Source: Carpediemonas membranifera BICM (Eukaryota > Protista > Fornicata). From it: 64,000 bases of DNA. The notes under the pieces were generated by a model. The model made no database searches. It had not been told where the DNA came from and saw only the letters and a program-made list of their open reading frames with translations. Shown in pieces: positions 2,592-63,865 of the stretch. Location: positions 729,333 to 793,332 of the forward strand of contig JAHDYR010000007.1 of assembly GCA_019828565.1 (NCBI GenBank), written 5' to 3'. A program made the translations under genes and the position numbers. The first letter of the stretch is position 1. Every line of letters starts with the position of its first letter.

Positions 2592-2659
2592 ATCGGTAAG
2601 GAATGCCGATTCTTCGCACTTTAGTGACACCACATATGTGGTTGGACTGCCCACCTTTA

Positions 2660-2685
2660 GACTCAACAATTCTAATCCTGCGCAG
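2660..2685 (+). repeat. Left terminal direct repeat GACTCAACAATTCTAATCCTGCGCAG (copy A)
   Basis: Identical 26-mer at 2660, 4017, 43587 and 45862. Confidence 0.95.
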
Positions 2686-3053
2686 GCCACTACCTCCACT
2701 CACCCACTTCAGCCCTCGTCTGTACCATCGGGCTTTCGTGCTTTCAGTCGTCGGTCTGCACGAAAAGATGCGTCGTCTGTCGTCCATCGTCTGTGTCTAA
2801 CGCTGCTGTCATCTTTCGCGTCTGTGCTCGTCTGTTACGCGCTCATCTTCCGTCCATTGCCGGTGTCTGAAGCTCATGACGTCGTCTTCGTCATCTTCGT
2901 CTGTTGTGAGAGACACTAGTGGTGGAAAGCGGTTGTAGCTAGTAGTAAAGACGCTTTGTGCTGCATGATGCTGGTTTCTTGTGTTTTGAGGGATGCTGCT
3001 AGCTGATGAACCCTGAAAAGAAATGATCGATGCAGGCAGCTCAATATACTCCG

Positions 3054-4060
3054 ATGCCTTCCAAGATATACACGGTGAAGGCTTCCGTTAACAAGGCCAT
3101 TGGCGAGATTAACGTAACGTGACGGTTTGAGTGGGTCGCGAGAAATACCGTGGCGGTCGGGTGGCTGACCGGCCCACGTACAAAAAGGGTAGCAGCAACA
3201 AGCGCTCGGTCAGGATGACGCCGAGGCTACTCCTGCCCCGGACATTCAAGCTCTCATGGGCTTCGACCCTGGTGCTCGGTCGCTGGACGGCTACACGATC
3301 CGCCGCCCAGACGGGCAGAGTGTATCTGGCGAACTCGCTAAGTGTGGCTACACTGCCACCCCCTCTTTCCGCGTGAATATGAGCGCAGCATCGTTCAAAA
3401 CGACAAGTCTAGAGGCTCTCAAACAGTCGATTAGGTTTGTCCATGAGAACATCGTTCAGATCATCAACGAGGGGACGAGAAAGTGTTTCCGCCGGGCGAC
3501 TTTTGCCAATCACTGTCTGCGCCTGAAGCACTTCGCCCGGGCTGGACGTCAACTCCTGGATGATCTCGGCGGGCGCCCCCCGGAGCCTTCACCTCGAAGT
3601 CGCGTATGGGGCACTGTTCGGTTCTGCCGGCACTCCCTCGTGTGCTCCGTACCGCCACTTTGCTCGAGCTCTTCCTGGCATCATGCTCCGGCACAACGTC
3701 GTCGTGAGTGTCACGATGGTCTCGGAATTCCGCACTTCCATCGTGTGCCCATACTGCAAAGTACACTTCAGACGTGTGGTGCACACACACCGCACCATGC
3801 TCTGCCAGAATCCCGCGTGCGAGGGAGCTCCATGGCGCGTTGAACGGCTACGTCGGCATCCCGAGCAGAGAGACATACTTCTCAATCTCTCTCACCGAGA
3901 TAAGAGCGCCAGCGAGAACATCCTTTGGTGCACCTTCGATGCAACTTCAGATCGATTGATAGAGTATGATAAACCACACTGCGATCCTGATGCTGCTTGG
4001 ATCACTGTCTGTTCTGGACTCAACAATTCTAATCCTGCGCAGCACAACATGTGCTATTGA
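3054..4060 (+). pseudogene. Fanzor1 (TnpB-like RuvC nuclease) pseudogene, N-terminal region deleted
   Basis: RuvC-I GFDPG, VAYGxLF, RuvC-II/Zn-finger EFRTSIVCPYC...CQNPAC and RuvC-III HRDKSASENI, spread over several frames. Confidence 0.88.
4017..4042 (+). repeat. Right terminal direct repeat (copy A), followed by the terminal CACAAC
   Basis: Identical to the left repeat. Identity with copy B stops after CACAAC (4048). Confidence 0.95.
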
Positions 4061-4084: not shown

Positions 4085-5999
4085 GGGTCGAACAATGTGT
4101 TTACACTGCGCAACACTGCCCTTTCTCCCTCCTACTCACGTCTTAAGTCGGCAGGGAGATCGTCTTCTCCAGGGCTTCCACAAAGCGTCTTCTTCGTGGA
4201 CGTCAGCACAGCTGCAAACATCACAATCGCTCACACGTCGTCTCATTGTCTTCTATTCCACATTAAATTCACTTCTACACTTGTATAGGCTGGTAATGGT
4301 GTTCATCGTCGCATGCTCATGGCTCATCGTATCGTCGTATGGATTGAGTCCCAGTCTCCGGGCGTGGTTCACCCGATACGCCAACTCTGTGAAGCTGTGG
4401 CTCGCCCGCACAGTGAAGACGTACCGTGACAGGCTACAGGGCAGCCTCGCCCGACTCGAAGAGGCTCTCGCAGGTGTTGGCTCTCCGGCCTTCTTCCAGC
4501 AGGAGTTGGCCGGCATTCACGCCATCCTCAACATGGTCAACCCTGTGATCCTCGCGTGTCTCCCCTCGCTGTTCTGGGCGGCTCACATGGGTGAGAACGA
4601 CGGGCTCCCAGTCTCCGAGGCTGCCCCACGCATTCTCTCTTGTGTCTGGGCAATTGCTGACGGAGTGGAGACGTTGAGTGGCCTCATCAGCCACTTCAAC
4701 GGGGAGTACTCGATGTCGCTCCGCCAGCCTCGCCTCGTGCCGATCGTGCCCATGGCCCCCGTCCGACCGGGCTTCATGGCCTACAGTGAAACGATGGGCC
4801 TACTGAACGGGAACTTCTGTCATCGTGTGGGAATTAATCCCACACTCCCACACGCCACCAAACCGTTGACAGAAGAGCAGGAGGAACTATACCAGAACAA
4901 CCCCAGGTCAATGGGCCGTCTGCTCAGCCTGAGCACCGATGGGGTCTGTGTGGCGGTGACGATTAAGAGAGGCTTCGGCCACTTTCGGCCACAGCATGAT
5001 GCGAGCATGGCTGTTCGAAAGCGAGCGAAAGGGCGGGAGAAAGAGCGCCCCCGACTCGGGGCCAATAATGCCGATGCTCCGCTCGCGCCGGATCCTGATG
5101 CCCACCTCATGGGGTTCGACCCCCCCGGGCGCGAGGTCCATCGGAGGGTATTACATCAGGCACCCCGATGGCTCCACCAGCTCCGGCGTCCTTCCAAAGT
5201 GCGGATACACTAAGACGCCAAGTTTCGGCTTTGATATGACGGCCACGTCGTTCAAGAGCACAAGACTAGTGAGTATCAACAACTCTATTAGGTTTGTGCT
5301 GGACAACGCGAACGACATTTTCGAGGCTGGAATGTGTAAGTCTTTCCGCTGAGTGCGCTTTGCGAACCACATCCTTCGCCCGCTGCGGCCAACAGTTGGC
5401 TCGGGAGTTCGGTTGGCGTCGCCACCATCCCATCGCCACCCCCATTCGCCTGAAAGTCTTCTACGGGAGCTCGGAATTCACCACGCCTGCTGGTATGTTC
5501 ATTCCTTGCGCGCCATATCGAAAGTTCGCGAGAGAGATAGTTCCCCTTCTCAAGGGGTATAACATTGTCGTCGATCTTAACATGGTTGACGAGGACCGCA
5601 CCACCGTCGTCTGCCCTCACTGCCACGCCCCCTACAAGCGAGTTCGTCCGCGTGATGACCAGCACGTTCACCCACATCGTGTGATGCTCTGCGAAAATCC
5701 ACAGTGCCGTGGTGCTCAGTGGCGCGCAACAGTTCCTGATGCTCTGAATGTTGATCATCGGGACAAAAGTGCTGCAGAGAACATCCTGTGGCGTTCTCTT
5801 GCCACGGAAGATGAGCTCAGTGGCTCTCCGTTCAGTCGCACATCGATCCCACGTCTTCAAACATCATTCCGGTATCATCAATTGGCTAACCGAACCTAAC
5901 ATTCGTCTACGGACGGATGATGTTGTACAGTTTGGCACTTTGATCGTTCCTTTCAGGCCCTGTCTAGAGGTTCAAAAAATGTTTATACTGCGCAACAAC
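4085..5999 (+). mobile_element. Divergent Fanzor1 element (copy C), degraded
   Basis: Fragmented ORF with PIVPMAPVRPGF, STDGVCVAVTI, GFDP, VFYGSSEF, DEDRTTVVCPHC, CENPQC and HRDKSAAENI. Imperfect terminal direct repeats TGTTTACACTGCGCAACA (4098-4115) and TGTTTATACTGCGCAACA (5980-5997); ends in CAAC. Boundaries are inferred by analogy with copies A/B. Confidence 0.8.
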
Positions 6000-25138: not shown

Positions 25139-26773
25139 TCACGGTTGTGAGGGCGACCACGGATCAACGTCGACTGGGATGATGTCCTCCCATCGGTCGG
25201 GCGCCATATCCTCTCGCATGCAGGCCACACGGCCCCCCTCATAGGCCTTGAACGACTGGCCCGACTGGTTTCGGAAACACCTGTCTGACCCCCCGAACGC
25301 CGTTGCCTCGAATGGGGCTGACAGCAGACAACTTCTACGCCATGCGTGAGTGATGCCCTCGCTAACCCAGACGACCCAGCTTGAAAGCAGGAACCCCGTA
25401 ACCCTCGCCCGAAACCTCAGGGGGGTCGGGTTGGGGCAGACATCGCCAACACTGAGGCCGGGCAGCAGTCCCGAATAGCGGATCAGGCGAGGTATCGCGC
25501 CTGCAAAAAACAGCTGACGACTACCAGCGAAGATGCAGTAGCTCTGGGCCGCGATAATGACCCGGTCGACGGAGACGCCGGTCACCTCAAACCCCCGAAT
25601 CGTCCGGTCATGGCCGAGCCCCAGTCGGCCGCGCCTGTTCTCACCGCTGATCAGTTGTTGATCACCCATGGAGAGGATGACTGTCAAGCTGCATTGAATA
25701 ATGCGATCTGGGACAAAACCAGGGGGAACGGCGACTGGGTGGAAGAGGTGCTCTCCACTCCCGGTGAATTGGGTGGATCTGCTGCCGGCCATGACAGTTC
25801 CTCGGGGAGTGAGGATGAAGGTGCGACCGTGGCACAATGACACAGCTGTCACAAACTGATGTTTGGCCCACGGTGCCAACCCAGCTTCCAGCTCAGCCAC
25901 CTTGGGGCATAGTGGGAAGGTGAGGCGGGTCGGGTCGACGAAACCATCTGACATGAACCCCAGCTGACCCTTACTGCTATTCCCCCAGCCCCACAGGCCC
26001 TTGGGCGTCCTGGCGATGTGGGTGAACTCATCGCTGTAGACCTCAAGGGCCCTGGGCATCCTGGCCCTTATGAATGAAGGGCGCAAAGGACAGTGGCGCA
26101 TGAGGAGTCGGCCCATGTAACGGTGGTGCTGATAGTGCAGGCCGAACCACAGCTTCTCGTAGCTCTCACAGTCTCTATTGGCTACGTTCAACCTGAATAG
26201 GAACTTCTTGCATAGCATCCAGGGGCGCTTGGCCTCTGGCCCCTGTGCCCCGCTAACCTGCGCCAAGAGCGGCGACCCGTCCGGAGTCTGGTCTTCAAGC
26301 AACAGTGACGCAGCATCGAACGGTTCATTCTGTTTGATGTTGGCGAGCACGCTGTCCTCGAGGTCTGGGGTCGCTCCGCTCGCCATGAGGATGGCCCAGA
26401 GAGTGCCCTGGTTCAGCGTGTGCAGGGCGACCGGGAGCTCCTCGCCCTCCGCGAGCTCGATGTTCATGGACAGCGGGGGGCCGTCTGCGAGGATCGAGCG
26501 GGCGCGGTCGAGGAGAACTTGTGCGGTCGGAGCGAGAGGGGGGATCTCTGAGAGCATGGCGATGAGGGATTCGAGCATAGTAGTGTCAGCTGGTGGAGAA
26601 TGCGACCCTGCATTGCGAATTGAGTGCATATTCTCGTGGAAGTGCCTGGAGTAGGCATGAGCGAGGAGACTGGGGATGTCTCCGGGGATCCTGGCCGTAG
26701 CGGCGGTGGAAAGCTGATATGCGGCGATCAACGCCGCTTTGACGTCAACTGGCACAGAAATTGGAGCGTCCAT
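25139..26773 (-). CDS. RCC1-repeat protein, lineage-specific family
   Basis: GWGNSSKGQLG and GENRRGRLGLGH; N-terminal domain shared with 33429-35015. Confidence 0.8.
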   Translation of the reverse strand: MDAPISVPVDVKAALIAAYQLSTAATARIPGDIPSLLAHAYSRHFHENMHSIRNAGSHSPPADTTMLESLIAMLSEIPPLAPTAQVLLDRARSILADGPPLSMNIELAEGEELPVALHTLNQGTLWAILMASGATPDLEDSVLANIKQNEPFDAASLLLEDQTPDGSPLLAQVSGAQGPEAKRPWMLCKKFLFRLNVANRDCESYEKLWFGLHYQHHRYMGRLLMRHCPLRPSFIRARMPRALEVYSDEFTHIARTPKGLWGWGNSSKGQLGFMSDGFVDPTRLTFPLCPKVAELEAGLAPWAKHQFVTAVSLCHGRTFILTPRGTVMAGSRSTQFTGSGEHLFHPVAVPPGFVPDRIIQCSLTVILSMGDQQLISGENRRGRLGLGHDRTIRGFEVTGVSVDRVIIAAQSYCIFAGSRQLFFAGAIPRLIRYSGLLPGLSVGDVCPNPTPLRFRARVTGFLLSSWVVWVSEGITHAWRRSCLLSAPFEATAFGGSDRCFRNQSGQSFKAYEGGRVACMREDMAPDRWEDIIPVDVDPWSPSQP

Positions 26774-26849
26774 GCTTCTAAGCGCTCAGTCTGCTCGTCG
26801 CTATCTTGTGCTGGAGTCGGGACTCGCCGACCCCCGCCGGCTGACATGC

Positions 26850-27033
26850 TGCGGACGCCGAGCCCGACGCCCTCCTCGTTGCCGTAGACCTGGGCTGAGA
26901 CGATGTGGCGGTAGCCCATGGCGACGGCGGCCTTGACGGCCTCAGCGGCGTCGGCAATCATCCAGGTGCCGAGCCCGAGCTTCGGGATGGCGTTGCCGTT
27001 AGAGAGTGTGTATTTATGTTCGAGGATGCTCAT
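26850..27033 (-). pseudogene. Aldo-keto reductase 5' fragment, fused to the RCC1-gene upstream region
   Basis: IPKLGLGTW...GYRHI.SAQVYGNEEGVG; AKR similarity stops after GVR. Confidence 0.85.
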
Positions 27034-27183
27034 TTGCTATCTTCTGTGCTTCTAGATCTCTTGATCATCACATCACCAACGTCGCACGCACTTCACGAAA
27101 TCAACTGATGCCCGAGGCGAGCGACGCGTGATCGGCCGACCCGCGCCAGACAGAGCTAGGCAAAGTGCTTTACAAACGTAAAC

Positions 27184-27974
27184 TTAAACGGCAGTGTAGC
27201 CGCCGTCGATGGGGAGGGCGATGCCGGTGACGTACGAGGCCTCCTCGCTGGCCAGGAAGATGGCGCCGGGATTGATCTCGCCCTCCTTGCCCCAGCGGAG
27301 CATGGGGACGGAGGCCTTGCAGTAGTTGTCGAACATCTCGGTCTCCATGAAGTCCTCGGTCAGCTCGGTGGTGAAGAAGCCGGGGCAGATGGCGTTGCAC
27401 GTGATGTTGTACTTGGCGAGCTCGGCAGCGACGGCGCGGGTGAAGTTGATGACGCCACCCTTGGAGGCGTGGTAGGCGGGGGCCTCGAGGACCTTGTTGC
27501 CGACCAGGCCGTAGATGGACGCGATGTTGATGATGCGGCCGTAGTTGTGCTTCTTCATGATGTTGCCGAAGGCGCGGGTCACGAGGAAGACGGACTTGAG
27601 GTCGACGTCGATGGTGAAGTCCCAATCCTCGTCGGTCATGTCGAGGCAGCCGCCGTTCTTGCTGGCGCCGGCGTTGTTGACGAGGATGTCGACCTTGCCG
27701 AACTTCTCCTCAGCGGCCTTGGCGGCGGCGTTGACGGACTCGGTGGACGTGACGTCGCACTTGATGCAGAGGCTCTCGGCGTTGTACTTCTCCTTGAGGA
27801 TCTTGGCGAGGGCCTCGCACTTCTCCACGCGGCGGGCCATGAGGACGAGGGCGGCGCCCTGCTGGGCAAAGGAATCAGCCATCTGCGTAAGGGGGCGCTG
27901 CGGTGACAAACCTGGTAGCCGAGGCCGGAGGAGGCGCCAGTGATAGCAACAACACGGTTATCGAAGCGGAACAT
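27184..27974 (-). CDS. Short-chain dehydrogenase/reductase (gluconate-5-DH/KduD-like), copy 1, 29-nt intron
   Basis: TGASSGLG | intron | NNAG, YHASKG, IDGG. Confidence 0.9.
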
Positions 27975-28461
27975 GGATGTTTGGGATAGTTTCACGAAGC
28001 GGTGAACAAGTGGAGACGATTGGGGGCCCTTACGTCCATAGCGTATCGCATCGCATCTTCGAACGCGAATCAAGATGCCGAGTTTGACGAAGGCAGAAAA
28101 TCGGGCGTAATTTCGCCGTCACGAGCGGCATGCCCTGAAAACAGCGCAGCTCAGCTCCCAGAGGCATCAATCAAATTCCGCAGTTTATGCATCAGCCTTA
28201 GCCTGCACTTTTCCATCGATTACAACGTGACGTTTCGATTCTGCGCGCATAAACTGCACCAACTAAACTGCGCGGTGTTTGGAATGGGAATTCGGATGGG
28301 AAGTGGAGGATGTTCGAGGATTGCTGTAATCAGTACATGCAATGCTGCTCAGATGATGCAGACAGGCGGCTGAGGCATCGTCCTGGGCAATGGTCAGCAT
28401 GATCGTTGCCACAAACTGCACATTTATACAAAGCACCGCCAGCCACTCCAGCGGCCCCCTC

Positions 28462-35417: not shown

Positions 35418-36388
35418 TCTGCCTTCGTCAAACTCGGCATCTTGATTCGCGTTCGAAGATGCGATGCGATACGCTATGGACGTAAGGGCCCCCAATCGTC
35501 TCCACTTGTTCACCGCTTCGTGAAACTATCCCAAACATCCATGTTCCGCTTCGATAACCGTGTTGTTGCTATCACTGGCGCCTCCTCCGGCCTCGGCTAC
35601 CAGGTTTGTCACCGCAGCGCCCCTTACGCAGATGGCTGATTCCTTTGCCCAGCAGGGCGCCGCCCTCGTCCTCATGGCCCGCCGCGTGGAGAAGTGCGAG
35701 GCCCTCGCCAAGATCCTCAAGGAGAAGTACAACGCCGAGAGCCTCTGCATCAAGTGCGACGTCACGTCCACCGAGTCCGTCAACGCCGCCGCCAAGGCCG
35801 CTGAGGAGAAGTTCGGCAAGGTCGACATCCTCGTCAACAACGCCGGCGCCAGCAAGAACGGCGGCTGCCTCGACATGACCGACGAGGATTGGGACTTCAC
35901 CATCGACGTCGACCTCAAGTCCGTCTTCCTCGTGACCCGCGCCTTCGGCAACATCATGAAGAAGCACAACTACGGCCGCATCATCAACATCGCGTCCATC
36001 TACGGCCTGGTCGGCAACAAGGTCCTCGAGGCCCCCGCCTACCACGCCTCCAAGGGTGGCGTCATCAACTTCACCCGCGCCGTCGCTGCCGAGCTCGCCA
36101 AGTACAACATCACGTGCAACGCCATCTGCCCCGGCTTCTTCACCACCGAGCTGACCGAGGACTTCATGGAGACCGAGATGTTCGACAACTACTGCAAGGC
36201 CTCCGTCCCCATGCTCCGCTGGGGCAAGGAGGGCGAGATCAATCCCGGCGCCATCTTCCTGGCCAGCGAGGAGGCCTCGTACGTCACCGGCATCGCCCTC
36301 CCCATCGACGGCGGCTACACTGCCGTTTAAGTTTACGTTTGTAAAGCACTTTGCTTAACTCTGTCTGACGCGGGTCGGCCCGATCACG
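35418..36388 (+). repeat. Inverted ~1-kb copy of the SDR locus (27126-28097)
   Basis: Reverse-complement identity covering the upstream region, CDS and 3' flank. Confidence 0.9.
35541..36330 (+). CDS. SDR, copy 2; 28-nt intron 35604-35631
   Basis: Same protein as copy 1. Confidence 0.9.
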
Positions 36389-43390: not shown

Positions 43391-43586
43391 CTGGCAAGCC
43401 GTTTGACCGTTTGGGACTGGAGAAAATTGACGAGATCAATGAGAAACTGTAAGATCGGATCAAACAGGATGTATTCGGCCACTGCACACCAAAATACTGC
43501 CAATAGTCTACTTACAGAGTCCACCTGATGCCCATGATGCTATTTCGCAGTTTATGTTAGGCGGGTCATAACTCGTGTGGTATTTA

Positions 43587-45893
43587 GACTCAACAATTCT
43601 AATCCTGCGCAGGCCACTACCTCCACTCACCCACTTCAGCCCTCGTCTGTACCATCGGGCTTTCGTGCTTTCAGTCGTCGGTCTGCACGAAAAGATGCGT
43701 CGTCTGTCGTCCATCGTCTGTGTCTAACGCTGCTGTCATCTTTCGCGTCTGTGCTCGTCTGTTACGCGCTCATCTTCCGTCCATTGCCGGTGTCTGAAGC
43801 TCATGACGTCGTCTTCGTCATCTTCGTCTGTTGTGAGAGACACTAGTGGTGGAAAGCGGTTGTAGCTAGTAGTAAAGACGCTTTGTGCTGCATGATGCTG
43901 GTTTCTTGTGTTTTGAGGGATGCTGCTAGCTGATGAACCCTGAAAAGAAATGATCGATGCAGGCAGCTCAATAGACTCCGATGCCTTCCAAGATATACAC
44001 GGTGAAGGCTTCCGTTAACAAGGCCATTGGCGAGATTAACGGCGGAGGCGATAACAACGCGCCGCGGCGAGGAAATCTTGAACCGGGCATGCGTTCTTTC
44101 ACGCAGGCTAAGTACACATTCACTTGCCTGCGTCTCTGCATCTGCGCACGCGTTGACCCCACCGAGGACGGTCAACCTGTTCGACGAAGAGGTCCTCGCG
44201 CAGATCGTCAGCATTGCTCAGCAAAAGGTGTCGAAGGCAAAGGCAGCGGATCGGTGCAGGTGGATTTGCGACCTGGCGATGTGGAGGGACCCTGACATAA
44301 CCCCACTCGTCCGGGACTTCAGGGAAGCCTACGTTGGAATTGCATTTCCATTTCAGAGCTGGTTGGGCGAGTACTCCACAGCCACCCGGGTCTGGCTCTC
44401 GCGCGCGTCACCCGGGTACCTGACCCGTCTTCGTGCTGTATTAGAACGGGTGCGTCCGCTCCTCCATGATCCGCCGGGTGTTCGACAGGATTTTCTCGAC
44501 ACCCTAGGCGAGCTCGACACTGAGGTTGCCGCAATATCCGCCGATCATGACATGCATCATCGACAAATGCATGCATTGCCCGAGGGACAACGGGTGGGTC
44601 GCACTGGTACCGTGGCCGAGGCCCTCGTCGGCGTGCTGTCGTGCGTCACGCGCATGAGTGCTGCAGTGACCAAGCTGGTCACACTCACTCGTGCCGTGAA
44701 CCTCGAGTTCAGTCAGGCCCTGCCAGAGCCGAAGCTCGTCCCGTTCGTGCCGATGGCACCGGTCAGGCCTGGGTTCATGACCATCGAGCGCGGAGTAACA
44801 GTGCTCACCCCAGCGATGAAGCGGCGCCTGCGTGTGCACGTGAATTGGTCAGCAACCAAGAATTTGACCGACGAGCAGGTGGCTGAATACGAGCGTGATC
44901 ACGGCGACATCACCAAGCTCCGCAGAGTGCTCTCTGTGAGGACTGACGGGGTCTCTGTTGCTGTGACGGTTTGAGTGGGTCGCGAGAAATATCGTGGCGG
45001 TCGGGTGGCTGACCGGCCCACGTACAAAAAGGGTAGCAGCAACAAGCGCTCGGTCAGGATGACGCCGAGGCTACTCCTGCCCCGGACATTCAAGCTCTCA
45101 TGGGCTTCGACCCTGGTGCTCGGTCGCTGGACGGCTACACGATCCGCCGCCCAGACGGGCAGAGTGTATCTGGCGAACTCGCTAAGTGTGGCTACACTGC
45201 CACCCCCTCTTTCCGCGTGAATATGAGCGCAGCATCGTTCAAAACGACAAGTCTAGAGGCTCTCAAACAGTCGATTAGGTTTGTCCATGAGAACATCGTT
45301 CAGATCATCAACGAGGGGACGAGAAAGTGTTTCCGCCGGGCGACTTTTGCCAATCACTGTCTGCGCCTGAAGCACTTCGCCCGGGCTGGACGTCAACTCC
45401 TGGATGATCTCGGCGGGCGCCCCCCGGAGCCTTCACCTCGAAGTCGCGTATGGGGCTGCACTGTTCGGTTCTGCCGGCACTCCCTCGTGTGCTCCGTACC
45501 GCCACTTTGCTCGAGCTCTTCCTGGCATCATGCTCCGGCACAACGTCGTCGTGAGTGTCACGATGGTCTCGGAATTCCGCACTTCCATCGTGTGCCCATA
45601 CTGCAAAGCACACTTCAGACGTGTGGTGCACACACCGCACCATGCTCTGCCAGAATCCCGCGTGCGAGGGAGCTCCATGGCGCGTTGAACGGCTACGTCG
45701 GCATCCCGAGCAGAGAGACATACTTCTCAATCTCTCTCACCGAGATAAGAGCGCCAGCGAGAACATCCTTTGGTGCACCTTCGATGCAACTTCAGATCGA
45801 TTGATAGAGTATGATAAACCACACTGCGATCCTGATGCTGCTTGGATCACTGTCTGTTCTGGACTCAACAATTCTAATCCTGCGCAGCACAAC
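43587..45893 (+). mobile_element. Fanzor1 element, full-length copy B (2307 bp)
   Basis: Boundaries defined by comparison with copy A. 26-bp direct repeats at 43587-43612 and 45862-45887; preceded by TTTA, ends in CACAAC; no TSD. Confidence 0.92.
43981..45893 (+). pseudogene. Fanzor1 nuclease (~630 aa when reconstructed), disrupted
   Basis: YTVKASVNK, PMAPVRPGFMTI, RTDGVSVAV, GFDPG, SFKTTS, VAYGAALF, EFRTSIVCPYC, CQNPAC and RDKSASENI. Lesions: frameshift ~44080, TGA 44972, frameshifts ~45047, ~45420 and ~45630. Confidence 0.9.
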
Positions 45894-45927
45894 TCGAATA
45901 GCAAGCAGCACATCGAGGCTGATTGCT

Positions 45928-47769
45928 ATGATCGTCAAAACAGCGGCATGTGCCGAATTTAACATCCACGTAGGCACTGAGATCCTTGTTTCGTACCCCT
46001 GCGCCATCCCTCTTGCAAAGACAGCTCTGTGCGAGCTTGCCATCCCCGAGGGATCCCACCACCGCACATGGGACTCAACGTTCTTCACGATACATCCAGA
46101 AAGCCGCGATGACGTCAACATCGCCGTTGGAGAGCGCTCGTGCCCTCCGATTGCTGTCACGGCCTACCATTACGACGCGAACCAGCGCAAGTGGGTCATC
46201 ATAGGCACCAGCGCAGACTTCCAGGAGTGCATCTTCTCCCTCCGCGCCACTACTCCCAAGATGTACTTCCAGAACGTCTCGGACCACACTGTCGTCCTGG
46301 ACATGGTGCTGCATCCGAAGATCGAGATCACCAAGCTCAGCGATGAGCTCTGGTGCATGTATGACATCCATGATGTCGCGATAGGCATCGCCTTTGCCGA
46401 TGAGGATGCCCGCTACGCCTTCGAGTACCAGATAAGCACGTACCACCGTTTCCACAAGGCAACTCAGGCCGAGACAATTCCAAAACTGCCCGTGACGAGC
46501 ACGCTGTTCGGGATAGCGGTTGTCGGCACACGCCACGACGACTCCCTCGACCGTGGGGCCCTGGTCCGGTCCATCGTCGTCGTGGGGGGCAGTCCGCTCA
46601 TTGACGCACTCAGACCCCTCGTCAAGCACTACGTGCAGCTCGTGCTGGACGGAATGGACCCTAAAACTGCGCTGGGGAGTCTCATCACGGCAGCGAACAC
46701 GGCGACGCCCGCTATCCCCGACCGGATGCCCCCGCCCGAGCTGGTCCGGTACAACCGCCTCGCACTCCTCCATCCAAGAGTCGATGTGCAGTTTACGACA
46801 CCAGAACGGGTGATCACCGGGCAGTTCCACGAATACCCGTTCCCGCACGAGAGCTGCGCCGCCTCACTGCTGGACCTGCATGAGATGCTCGGGGCGAAGA
46901 TGTTCCTTGTACTCAACGCGCTCCTATTCGGGAAGAAGATCATCTTTCACACGAGCGGGCCGGCTGCCAAGGTGTGCAACGCTGTGCTGTCCGCCACGCA
47001 GCTGGTGGATCCGTTCGTGCCGAGTATCTGCAACCGGGCAATCCCGTACGCATGCCTCGCGATGTCGGATGATTATCTCAAGAAGCCGAACTATATCTTG
47101 GGGGTGACAAATCCAATATTCCGGACACATCCGGAATGGTACGATCTTTGGGTCGATATCGACTCTGGCGAAGTCACGATTATGCCAGACTGCAGGCAGG
47201 TCGCCATCTATGCCTCCTTCGACGAGGACGCCCACGCCCGCCTCACACAGCTCACGGTCGAAGTCGCCAAGCGCGACGGCCCAAACGTGCCCTCCGCGGA
47301 GACTGCCACCCGAGTATTCATGTACCAGTACGTGAAGGATATCCTCGAGGCGGCCACATGTGTCACGGGTGCAGCCATTCCCGAGTACGGCCTGGTGAGG
47401 CTCAACGAGCTCAGCATCCTCAGCCATATCATCGGGCTGCGGGGAATGCTGACTGGAAACTGGGTCGACGAGGCGGTGAGGCGGCTGCGGGGCGGGAAGT
47501 GCGGCGGTGATCAGATCCAGAAGATCTTGACCACACTGGCAGAATCTTCGGACAAAGAGATGGTGCAGATGTTGACATTGTTCCCACGTGTGGTTGAGGG
47601 GATTCAGCTCATATCTAGTGGATTATTCAGTAGTGTGGATGAGATTCGGACATCGTCATATCTCCTGATGCAGCGAGTTGGGCAGTTGCCCGAGGGCAAG
47701 CCGTATATCGACGACCTCAACTACTTCACTCTCTTCCACTACGAGCGCGTCAAACGGAAGCTGGGTTGA
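45928..47769 (+). CDS. Afi1/MesA-like (DENN-related) protein
   Basis: AEFNIHVG...YP, ELAIPEGSH..TWDSTFF, LNALLFGKKIIF and YILGVTNPIF. Confidence 0.75.
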   Translation: MIVKTAACAEFNIHVGTEILVSYPCAIPLAKTALCELAIPEGSHHRTWDSTFFTIHPESRDDVNIAVGERSCPPIAVTAYHYDANQRKWVIIGTSADFQECIFSLRATTPKMYFQNVSDHTVVLDMVLHPKIEITKLSDELWCMYDIHDVAIGIAFADEDARYAFEYQISTYHRFHKATQAETIPKLPVTSTLFGIAVVGTRHDDSLDRGALVRSIVVVGGSPLIDALRPLVKHYVQLVLDGMDPKTALGSLITAANTATPAIPDRMPPPELVRYNRLALLHPRVDVQFTTPERVITGQFHEYPFPHESCAASLLDLHEMLGAKMFLVLNALLFGKKIIFHTSGPAAKVCNAVLSATQLVDPFVPSICNRAIPYACLAMSDDYLKKPNYILGVTNPIFRTHPEWYDLWVDIDSGEVTIMPDCRQVAIYASFDEDAHARLTQLTVEVAKRDGPNVPSAETATRVFMYQYVKDILEAATCVTGAAIPEYGLVRLNELSILSHIIGLRGMLTGNWVDEAVRRLRGGKCGGDQIQKILTTLAESSDKEMVQMLTLFPRVVEGIQLISSGLFSSVDEIRTSSYLLMQRVGQLPEGKPYIDDLNYFTLFHYERVKRKLG

Positions 47770-63378: not shown

Positions 63379-63865
63379 GGATGTTTGGGATAGTTTCACG
63401 AAGCGGTGAACAAGTGGAGACGATTGGGGGCCCTTACGTCCATAGCGTATCGCATCGCATCTTCGAACGCGAATCAAGATGCAGAGTTTGACGAAGGCAG
63501 AAAATCGGGCGTAATTTCGCCGTCACGAGCGGCATGCCCTGAAAACAGCGCAGCTCAGCTCCCAGAGGCATCAATCAAATTCCGCAGTTTATGCATCAGC
63601 CTTAGCCTGCACTTTTCCATCGATTACAACGTGACGTTTCGATTCTGCGCGCATAAACTGCACCAACTAAACTGCGCGGTGTTTGGAATGGGAATTCGGA
63701 TGGGAAGTGGAGGATGTTCGAGGATTGCTGTAATCAGTACATGCAATGCTGCTCAGATGATGCAGACAGGCGGCTGAGGCATCGTCCTGGGCAATGGTCA
63801 GCATGATCGTTGCCACAAACTGCACATTTATACAAAGCACCGCCAGCCACTCCAGCGGCCCCCTC

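Follow-up and report, generated by a model that had tools for sequence, protein, structure and literature searches.

TnpB-derived Fanzor nucleases are carried in eukaryotes by Mariner/Tc1, Helitron, Sola, IS4-like, Crypton and IS607-like elements. In 2013 Bao and Jurka reportedly described the carriers of Fanzor as DNA transposons. What carries, and what moves, a Fanzor-type gene is the question raised by a locus of Carpediemonas membranifera BICM, found in a stretch of 64,000 nt (contig JAHDYR010000007.1, positions 729,333 to 793,332 of the forward strand; hereafter the window), where an initial annotation had recognised such a gene inside a repeated unit. The answer that we favour, with a confidence only somewhat better than even, is a non-autonomous vehicle for a probable Fanzor/TnpB-like cargo, which would be inserted in trans by a retroviral-type (Ty3/gypsy) integrase. 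The vehicle encodes nothing for its own movement, and its anatomy, as far as it can be read from the sequence, is that of a stripped-down long terminal repeat (LTR)-type retroelement, with TG...CA ends, unequal direct repeats of ~40 nt, a purine tract and a fixed 5-bp target duplication.

The repeated unit is real. The 26-mer from which it had been defined is found exactly four times in the window (at 2660, 4017, 43587 and 45862, all on the + strand; 0 expected by chance), and a search of the assembly (24.2 Mb, 69 contigs) with the unit gave 86 matching pieces at at least 40 places, from 215 first-look candidates. The two units of the window are near-identical, with ~915 bp missing inside the first one. 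To define the ends, 20 full copies were lined up and their outside flanks compared. The direct repeat proved to be 30 nt long across the family, and not 26, with a degenerate extension of 9-11 nt outward of it; the repeats are direct and not inverted, as had been annotated. After CACA the flanking sequence is unique to each copy, and at the left of the shared sequence TGTGGTATTTA or a near variant is present in every copy, the termini TGTGG... and ...CACA being constant in all the full copies. The window element thus runs from TGTGGTATTTA at 43576, 11 nt further left than the annotated start after TTTA, to ...GCAGCACA at 45891, ending at CACA instead of CACAAC, and TTTA, found upstream of the 30-mer in 27 of 31 left ends, is within the element. 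The first window copy (2637-4046) begins with TGTGGT, which 13 nt of filler part from TTTA; its flanks are ACATA (2632-2636) and ACATG (4047-4051).

The vehicle is ~2.4-2.7 kb long, and full copies are typically ~113 bp longer than the window copy, with the extra sequence near the 3' end. As had been noted for the window, there is no transposase inside the element. Longer copies encoding a Y1 or serine recombinase, which the initial annotation had proposed to look for, did not appear: in the ~30 best copies no transposase and neither recombinase was seen, and the longest is 2.66 kb, its excess length consisting of a segment, X, that is described below. Many internal-deletion derivatives are found in the family, the first copy of the window among them. 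One such derivative, with a joint from 43765 to 45516, is also present at L032, and was seen in contigs of runs from three studies, one of them under another organism label.

With TGTGG taken as the start and CACA as the end, the 5 nt outside each end were compared. The two flanks were identical in 21 of 34 end pairs and matched at four or more of the five positions in 23 of 34, whereas in 1000 shuffled pairings 1.6 pairs on average, and never more than 7, matched at this level. The window element itself is bounded by ACTCG on both sides, and the claim that no flanking sequence is duplicated does not stand.

The insertions also share a target. The sequence GCAGTTTATG, with up to two mismatches, was found upstream of 20 of the 23 duplication-verified insertions, against 1.4% of random 40-nt stretches used as control. 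The gap between GCAGTTTA and the duplication was 7 nt in 14 cases, 8 in 4 and 6 in 1, with 16 nt in the window copy; the first window copy has the form GCACTTTA at 2616-2623. It is this host motif, and not TTTA, that marks the target: TTTA is inside the duplication-bounded element, and was rejected both as target and as target-adjacent motif (TAM). A reading of the 30-mer as guide was likewise rejected. With 21 matches in the window vs 3.1 expected, the motif is enriched there, and in 11 of the 23 insertions an ATG-started open reading frame (ORF) of at least 100 aa begins not more than 35 nt downstream in the same direction (control 12.6%, p = 4e-5). In the window, the motif (43547) stands on one side of the element and the ATG (45931) of a SPA/AVL9/DENN-type gene on the other, motif and gene being thereby parted. 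A gene-by-gene test within the window, which was under-powered, gave the motif upstream of 2 of 26 genes vs downstream of 3 of 26. In our reading, a subset of the genes would use GCAGTTTA/GCAGTTTATG as a core-promoter or initiator-like element.

A candidate for the enzyme was found in the resident Ty3/gypsy elements. The 12-mer GTGTGGTATTTA was found at 25 sites of the genome, vs 3 for a control pattern, and about ten of these sites are the start of a 96-nt LTR (TGTGGTATTTACATG...ACTTCA) whose first 11 nt are the left 11 nt of the vehicle, TGTGGTATTTA. The elements with this LTR have reverse transcriptase (RT), RNase H, integrase and chromodomain, and their 3' LTR is preceded by an integrase-chromodomain ORF and by a purine tract ending in GGGGTAG before TGTG; one of them (C16:151496-155830) is flanked by the 5-bp duplication TGTCG. 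On the strand opposite to Fanzor, the vehicle has a purine-rich tract ending in GGAGGTAG immediately before TGTGCTGCG..., and a second Ty3 family shows a like junction between purine tract and TG. The Ty3-like purine tract, the TG...CA ends and the 5-bp duplication together point to a retroviral-type integrase; more broadly, the duplication, the ends and the target are marks of a retroviral-type DDE integrase or of a retroelement endonuclease, and not of an HUH enzyme or serine recombinase.

The two kinds of element also use the same motif. In 4 of 8 Ty3 flanks the end of the LTR is followed by 5 nt, then by exactly 7 nt and then by GCAGTTTA or GCACTTTA, in such a way that Ty3 lands 7 nt upstream of the motif and the vehicle 7 nt downstream, as mirror images. 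As vehicle and resident Ty3 both land 7 nt from it, on either side, a tethered integrase is suggested: a factor that sits on GCAGTTTA would hold a Ty3/gypsy integrase in place. The vehicle itself is found between the motif and the start codon of a host gene. Two families spaced exactly and as mirror images around one 8-bp motif offer a way to approach the tethering of integration sites, and also core-promoter architecture, in a deep-branching metamonad. At one locus (L034, G000:C6:1725666-1728677) a Ty3 3' LTR is followed by 4 nt and then by the right end of the Fanzor vehicle in reverse, two insertions in one hotspot.

The left end of the vehicle is a mosaic. In 28 of 31 left ends, segment X (28-468 nt) lies between TGTGGTATTTA and the TTTA plus 30-mer, the window copy being one of only three without it. 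The first base of X is constant and its other end varies, with 26 break points in 28 copies; in none of the 28 breaks is TTTA the continuation of X itself, and the junctions show 0-4 filler bases or 1-3 nt of microhomology. Stubs were also seen at the junction, such as TTTAGAC followed by TTTAGACTC or, elsewhere, the 6-nt start of X before a full X. Short elements that consist only of the left terminus, X and a single 30-mer, and that have 5-bp duplications of their own, occur as well (L045, L050, L051, L053).

X corresponds to the 3' end of an antisense ORF of at least 303 aa, those 303 aa being found in L049 within an open frame of 392 codons. The protein had no match in Pfam or PDB and no similarity to Ty3 pol, and in ESM Atlas its features are like those of zf-RVT clusters (0.94). 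Nearly all of the 109 genomic matches of X end at the C-terminus of the ORF and differ in their starts. No RT domain of X was seen, and a scan of the genome with the RVT_1 profile gave 1519 candidates; X appears to belong to a nearly extinct retroelement. The density of private mutations (1.4% in X vs 0.5-0.6% in the vehicle) gives no apparent sign that X arrived later than the vehicle. At one locus (L055; 307, 2388 and 4467) host flank and X form a tandem triplicate with a period of ~2080 bp, and one protein (P0034) is a host gene fused to a scrap of X. In another arrangement (L047:1002-1700), a solo left terminus is joined to 95 nt of X and to a single 30-mer, directly after which comes the 3' half of another Fanzor family, of ~50% amino acid identity, from which it follows that one terminal module serves more than one cargo lineage.

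How the vehicle would be copied can be proposed from these ends. Its two terminal repeats are unequal in every copy, the left one (in the direction of Fanzor) being TGTGGTATTTA plus the 30-mer and the right one TGTGTTTTG plus the 30-mer. The classical two-jump LTR cycle makes both repeats of a new copy identical. Such a cycle was rejected, as the repeats of the vehicle differ in a fixed, inherited way, which implies that the ends are copied through unchanged or that one of them is supplied in trans. Copying would probably proceed by reverse transcription, from a template RNA that is antisense to the Fanzor gene and would extend from the outer TGTGC... end to the inner ...GAGUCUAAA boundary; synthesis would begin at the 3' end of X RNA before changing over to that of the vehicle RNA (...UAAA). 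Template switching of this kind would explain why almost every copy has a different length of X. For such an RNA intermediate, the antisense strand is indicated by the purine tract and by the sense in which X lies, and the sense strand would be equally compatible with the 11 nt shared with the start of the Ty3 LTR and with a site behind a host promoter.

Several observations weigh against the insertion of the vehicle by a Ty3-type integrase after such copying. Only one of its ends matches a readable Ty3 family, no autonomous partner with both ends was found in the genome stretches read, and vehicle and Ty3 lie on opposite sides of the motif. The outer 9-11 nt of the two terminal repeats differ within all copies, and in 7 copies, at different loci and with their own duplications, the 30-mer is present as variant A at the left and B at the right. 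No TGG-type primer-binding site stands beside either repeat, the window holding no tRNA gene for comparison; the Ty3 element at C16:151496-155830 is also without a classical one. No full-length parent of X was found among the genome stretches read, and X could be a site-specific non-LTR element that hits copies after their insertion, in which case the chimeras would say nothing about copying. Finally, four Logan read runs gave no empty-site joint, their contigs being broken up in the repeat and without strand information; the joints that they did show were only internal deletions of other copies.

A more far-reaching form of the integrase reading is possible and, at present, doubtful. The vehicle would be a retroelement without promoter or enzyme that a Ty3-type intasome places exactly 7 nt behind a core-promoter motif of the host, in mirror image to the site of Ty3 itself, the host promoter would read into the Fanzor gene, and the left end would be rebuilt in each round by template switching with a helper RNA. 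If true, the vehicle would be the first retrotransposon to carry a nuclease of the OMEGA group (obligate mobile element-guided activity), and a natural promoter-trap design.

Among the other explanations, mobilisation by X itself survives best, and we consider it unlikely. Here X would be of non-LTR type and the vehicle would behave like a short interspersed element (SINE): the RT/endonuclease of X would nick 7 nt from the motif, copy X RNA and jump to the vehicle RNA, in such a way that each insertion is a fresh chimera, as in U6-L1 retrocopies. The CCHC knuckle and the PD-(D/E)xK-like C-terminus of the antisense ORF, its zf-RVT resemblance and its lack of similarity to Ty3 pol all suit this proposal, as do the matches of X with varied starts, which look like 5' truncation, the many break points with filler nucleotides, the unequal ends of the vehicle copied unchanged, and the fact that X is not visibly younger than the vehicle. 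However, the duplication has a fixed length of 5 bp and an A tail is absent; one would have to put down to coincidence the TG...CA ends, the 11 nt identical to the start of the Ty3 LTR, the polypurine-like tract and a 7-nt spacing that mirrors that of a Ty3; UAAA would need to be the end of the acceptor RNA, which would lack the outermost 7 nt that every copy has; and neither an RT domain of X nor a full-length X was found. Pure mobilisation by a long interspersed element (LINE) is regarded as a rival only.

Less probable still is a DNA transposon moved by an integrase-like DDE transposase, of Ginger type or similar, with X as later insertions of a site-specific retroelement. The TG...CA ends and the 5-bp duplication fit such enzymes, both ends would simply be inherited unchanged, and the many internal-deletion derivatives, which include the first copy of the window, are in keeping with it. 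Yet the terminal repeats are direct rather than inverted, a Ty3-like purine tract stands in the right place, the junction shows duplicated short stubs of the start of the vehicle itself, and no such transposase was seen in the ~30 copies mentioned, the longest of which owes its extra length to X.

We give next to no credence to the model of the initial annotation, an IS200/IS605- or IS607-like insertion 3' of TTTA by an HUH enzyme or serine recombinase, which had in its favour the TTTA before most of the 30-mers, the direct repeats and the missing transposase, since a movement without duplication is ruled out by the 5-bp duplication and by a TTTA that is internal, with TGTGGTA and in many cases also X, of up to 468 nt, between it and the flank, and since it is likewise contradicted by the TG...CA ends and by a conserved host feature that is GCAGTTTA, 7 nt upstream.

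The cargo of the window copy is a dead pseudogene. It has five private disabling lesions (deletions of 8, 7, 2 and 2 nt after 44128, 45047, 45431 and 45628, and a TGA at 44972) plus a terminal deletion, in which the last ~20 codons were lost together with the 3' region. One copy (L013:1442-3367:-) keeps an open frame of 642 codons; its codon 6 is TAG in 15 of 19 copies, and the true start is probably the Met at window position 43981, which would give ~633 aa. All the motifs on which the annotation as Fanzor was founded are present in this open frame, TDGVS and, in order in the C-terminal half, the RuvC-I Asp (GFDPG), the RuvC-II Glu (SEFRTS), the zinc finger (CPYC...CQNPAC) and the RuvC-III Asp (RDKSASEN), and the RuvC and zinc-finger motifs are kept in paralogues of ~50% identity. 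This order and a size of ~630 aa are those of Fanzor1.

The intact protein and its alignment found nothing above threshold in Pfam (with the family profiles PF07282 and PF01385), NCBIfam, PDB sequence or profile searches; unlike the known Fanzor1 proteins, the present one is too divergent for the Pfam and PDB sequence thresholds. PF07282 (cut-off 26.3 bits) gave sub-threshold matches at the zinc finger in 11 of 22 paralogues (4/14 and 7/8; best E 0.003), and in a scan of the genome it matched Ty3 integrase zinc fingers, not Fanzor. A search of 1.84 billion representatives returned only fragments at 29-96% identity and no distant family, and a wider profile search gave 42 matches, all of them C. 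membranifera proteins or two transcripts clustering with those. ORFs (P0048, P0058) of a EukProt transcriptome labelled Copromyxa protea cluster at 90% identity or more with the C. membranifera Fanzor-like paralogues; they are probably cross-contamination, and nevertheless evidence that Fanzor-like genes are transcribed.

In ESM Atlas, residues 385-642 reach feature similarities of 0.96-0.97 (181-200 of 256 shared) to PF07282 clusters of giant viruses, fungi and arthropods, and its own model of residues 385-635 gives template modelling (TM) scores of 0.55-0.65 to PF07282 clusters from eukaryotes, giant viruses, bacteria and archaea, with IS605 OrfB clusters of the two prokaryotic domains among these fold matches. 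AlphaFold models of the full length and of the C-terminal domain, from shallow alignments, had a predicted local distance difference test (pLDDT) of 42 and 36, too poor for a fold search. For the guide RNA that Fanzor/TnpB nucleases have encoded at the 3' end, Rfam gave no relevant match on L013, only a sub-threshold one to U7, and the copies are too alike for covariation analysis. The Fanzor-type assignment thus stands on motif order and on ESM Atlas features and fold, with the Pfam and PDB sequence searches below threshold, and we hold a Fanzor/TnpB-like cargo to be quite probable.

The subfamily shows near-neutral change, with synonymous to non-synonymous ratios of 57:126 for private and 51:114 for shared variants (the per-column majority served as reference for counting only, and no repaired frame was built). 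Many disabling lesions are common to several copies, indicating that copies with dead cargo kept moving. Current thinking ties TnpB and Fanzor to excising transposons, in which the nuclease restores the lost copy by cutting the empty site. If a Fanzor family rides on a copy-and-paste vehicle of integrase type, the nuclease needs another role, or the gene can simply ride along as a passenger; for this subfamily, the lesions shared between copies and the near-neutral decay favour the passenger view.

Terminal-repeat retrotransposons in miniature (TRIM) and large retrotransposon derivatives (LARD) have no pol, and have terminal direct repeats, TG...CA ends, a purine tract and a short duplication of fixed length; Ty3 and Tf1 integrate at a fixed distance from a transcription-factor site. 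The vehicle resembles them in its ends, tract, duplication and fixed-distance integration, and differs in that its repeats are only ~40 nt long, unequal and not regenerated in each round, in that no primer-binding site was recognised, and in having an antisense nuclease cargo and a left end that is a mosaic with the 3' end of another retroelement. In U6-L1 chimeric retrocopies, a variable 3' piece of one retroelement is joined via filler to the exact 3' end of a second RNA. The vehicle has the same succession of variable piece, filler and exact 3' end, with one target duplication around all, although its junction is regular (28/31 copies) and not a rare by-product, and its duplication is of fixed length. 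Of a SINE-like partner of a non-LTR element one would expect a 3' tail shared with the partner, a duplication of variable length, an A-rich tail and 5' truncation; the vehicle shares 11-468 nt of X, and has a duplication fixed at 5 bp, no A tail and a body that is not 5' truncated. The bacterial IS200/IS605 and IS607 elements likewise carry a TnpB-family nuclease, and an AT-rich tetranucleotide before the repeat had been noted in the initial annotation, but those elements make no duplication, insert beside a host tetranucleotide and have subterminal hairpins or recombinase-bound repeats, none of which applies to the vehicle.

With the Fanzor1 elements in eukaryotic DNA transposons (PMC3627910; 10.1101/2023.06.13.544871) the vehicle shares a TnpB-derived cargo, many copies and a carrier that is often without transposase; the TG...CA ends, direct repeats, purine tract, 5-bp duplication and Ty3-like targeting set it apart from them. 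A retrotransposon carrier of Fanzor was not reported by Bao and Jurka 2013 (PMC3627910), and a 2026 review (PMC13565253) knows of no retrotransposon that encodes Fanzor, naming cut-and-paste transposons as fitting carriers. A carrier of the present type was not found described in the Fanzor literature that we searched.

Table 1. Coordinates of the vehicle, its cargo, its target and related features. Positions are those of the window unless a locus is named.
Feature	Position	Strand	Remarks
Host motif GCAGTTTATG, promoter-like	43547..43556	+	upstream of the duplication of the window copy
Target duplication ACTCG of window element, left copy	43571..43575	.	flank comparison
Left terminus TGTGGTATTTA	43576..43586	+	same as first 11 nt of resident Ty3/gypsy 96-nt LTR
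Left 30-nt terminal direct repeat	43587..43616	+	26-mer + 4 nt: GCCA here, CACA in other copies
Purine-rich tract adjoining the repeat, ending ...GGAGGTAG before TGTG	43617..43642	-	resembles resident Ty3 polypurine tract
Fanzor/TnpB-like pseudogene	43981..45797	+	96% identical to intact copy L013
Degenerate counterpart of left terminus	45851..45861	+	reads TGTCTGTTCTG in this copy and TGTGTTTTG in most
Right 30-nt terminal direct repeat, element end at CACA	45862..45891	+	repeat alignment
Target duplication ACTCG of window element, right copy	45892..45896	.	flank comparison
Host gene, SPA/AVL9/DENN-type	45931..47769	+	start codon 34 nt after insertion
First window copy, ~915-bp internal deletion	2637..4046	+	comparison with the 43576-45891 unit
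X-bearing ORF	L049:8037-8948	+	CCHC knuckle and PD-(D/E)xK-like C-terminal stretch
Ty3/gypsy chromovirus family, 96-nt LTRs	L039:1002-1097, L040:1002-1097 (G000:C16:151496-155830); also L031, L034, L037, L042-L044, L048		

Two further repeats were seen along the way. A common sequence of ~30 nt, gaacaatgtgtttacactgcgcaacactgc, lies beside three unrelated insertions, at 4090-4121 of the window and in the flanks of L005 and L016, and may be the end of another repeat family. The window also has identical segmental repeats of up to 1.7 kb, direct at 26468-28191 and 61873-63595 and inverted at 35418-36380, which include a short-chain dehydrogenase gene (35560-36330).

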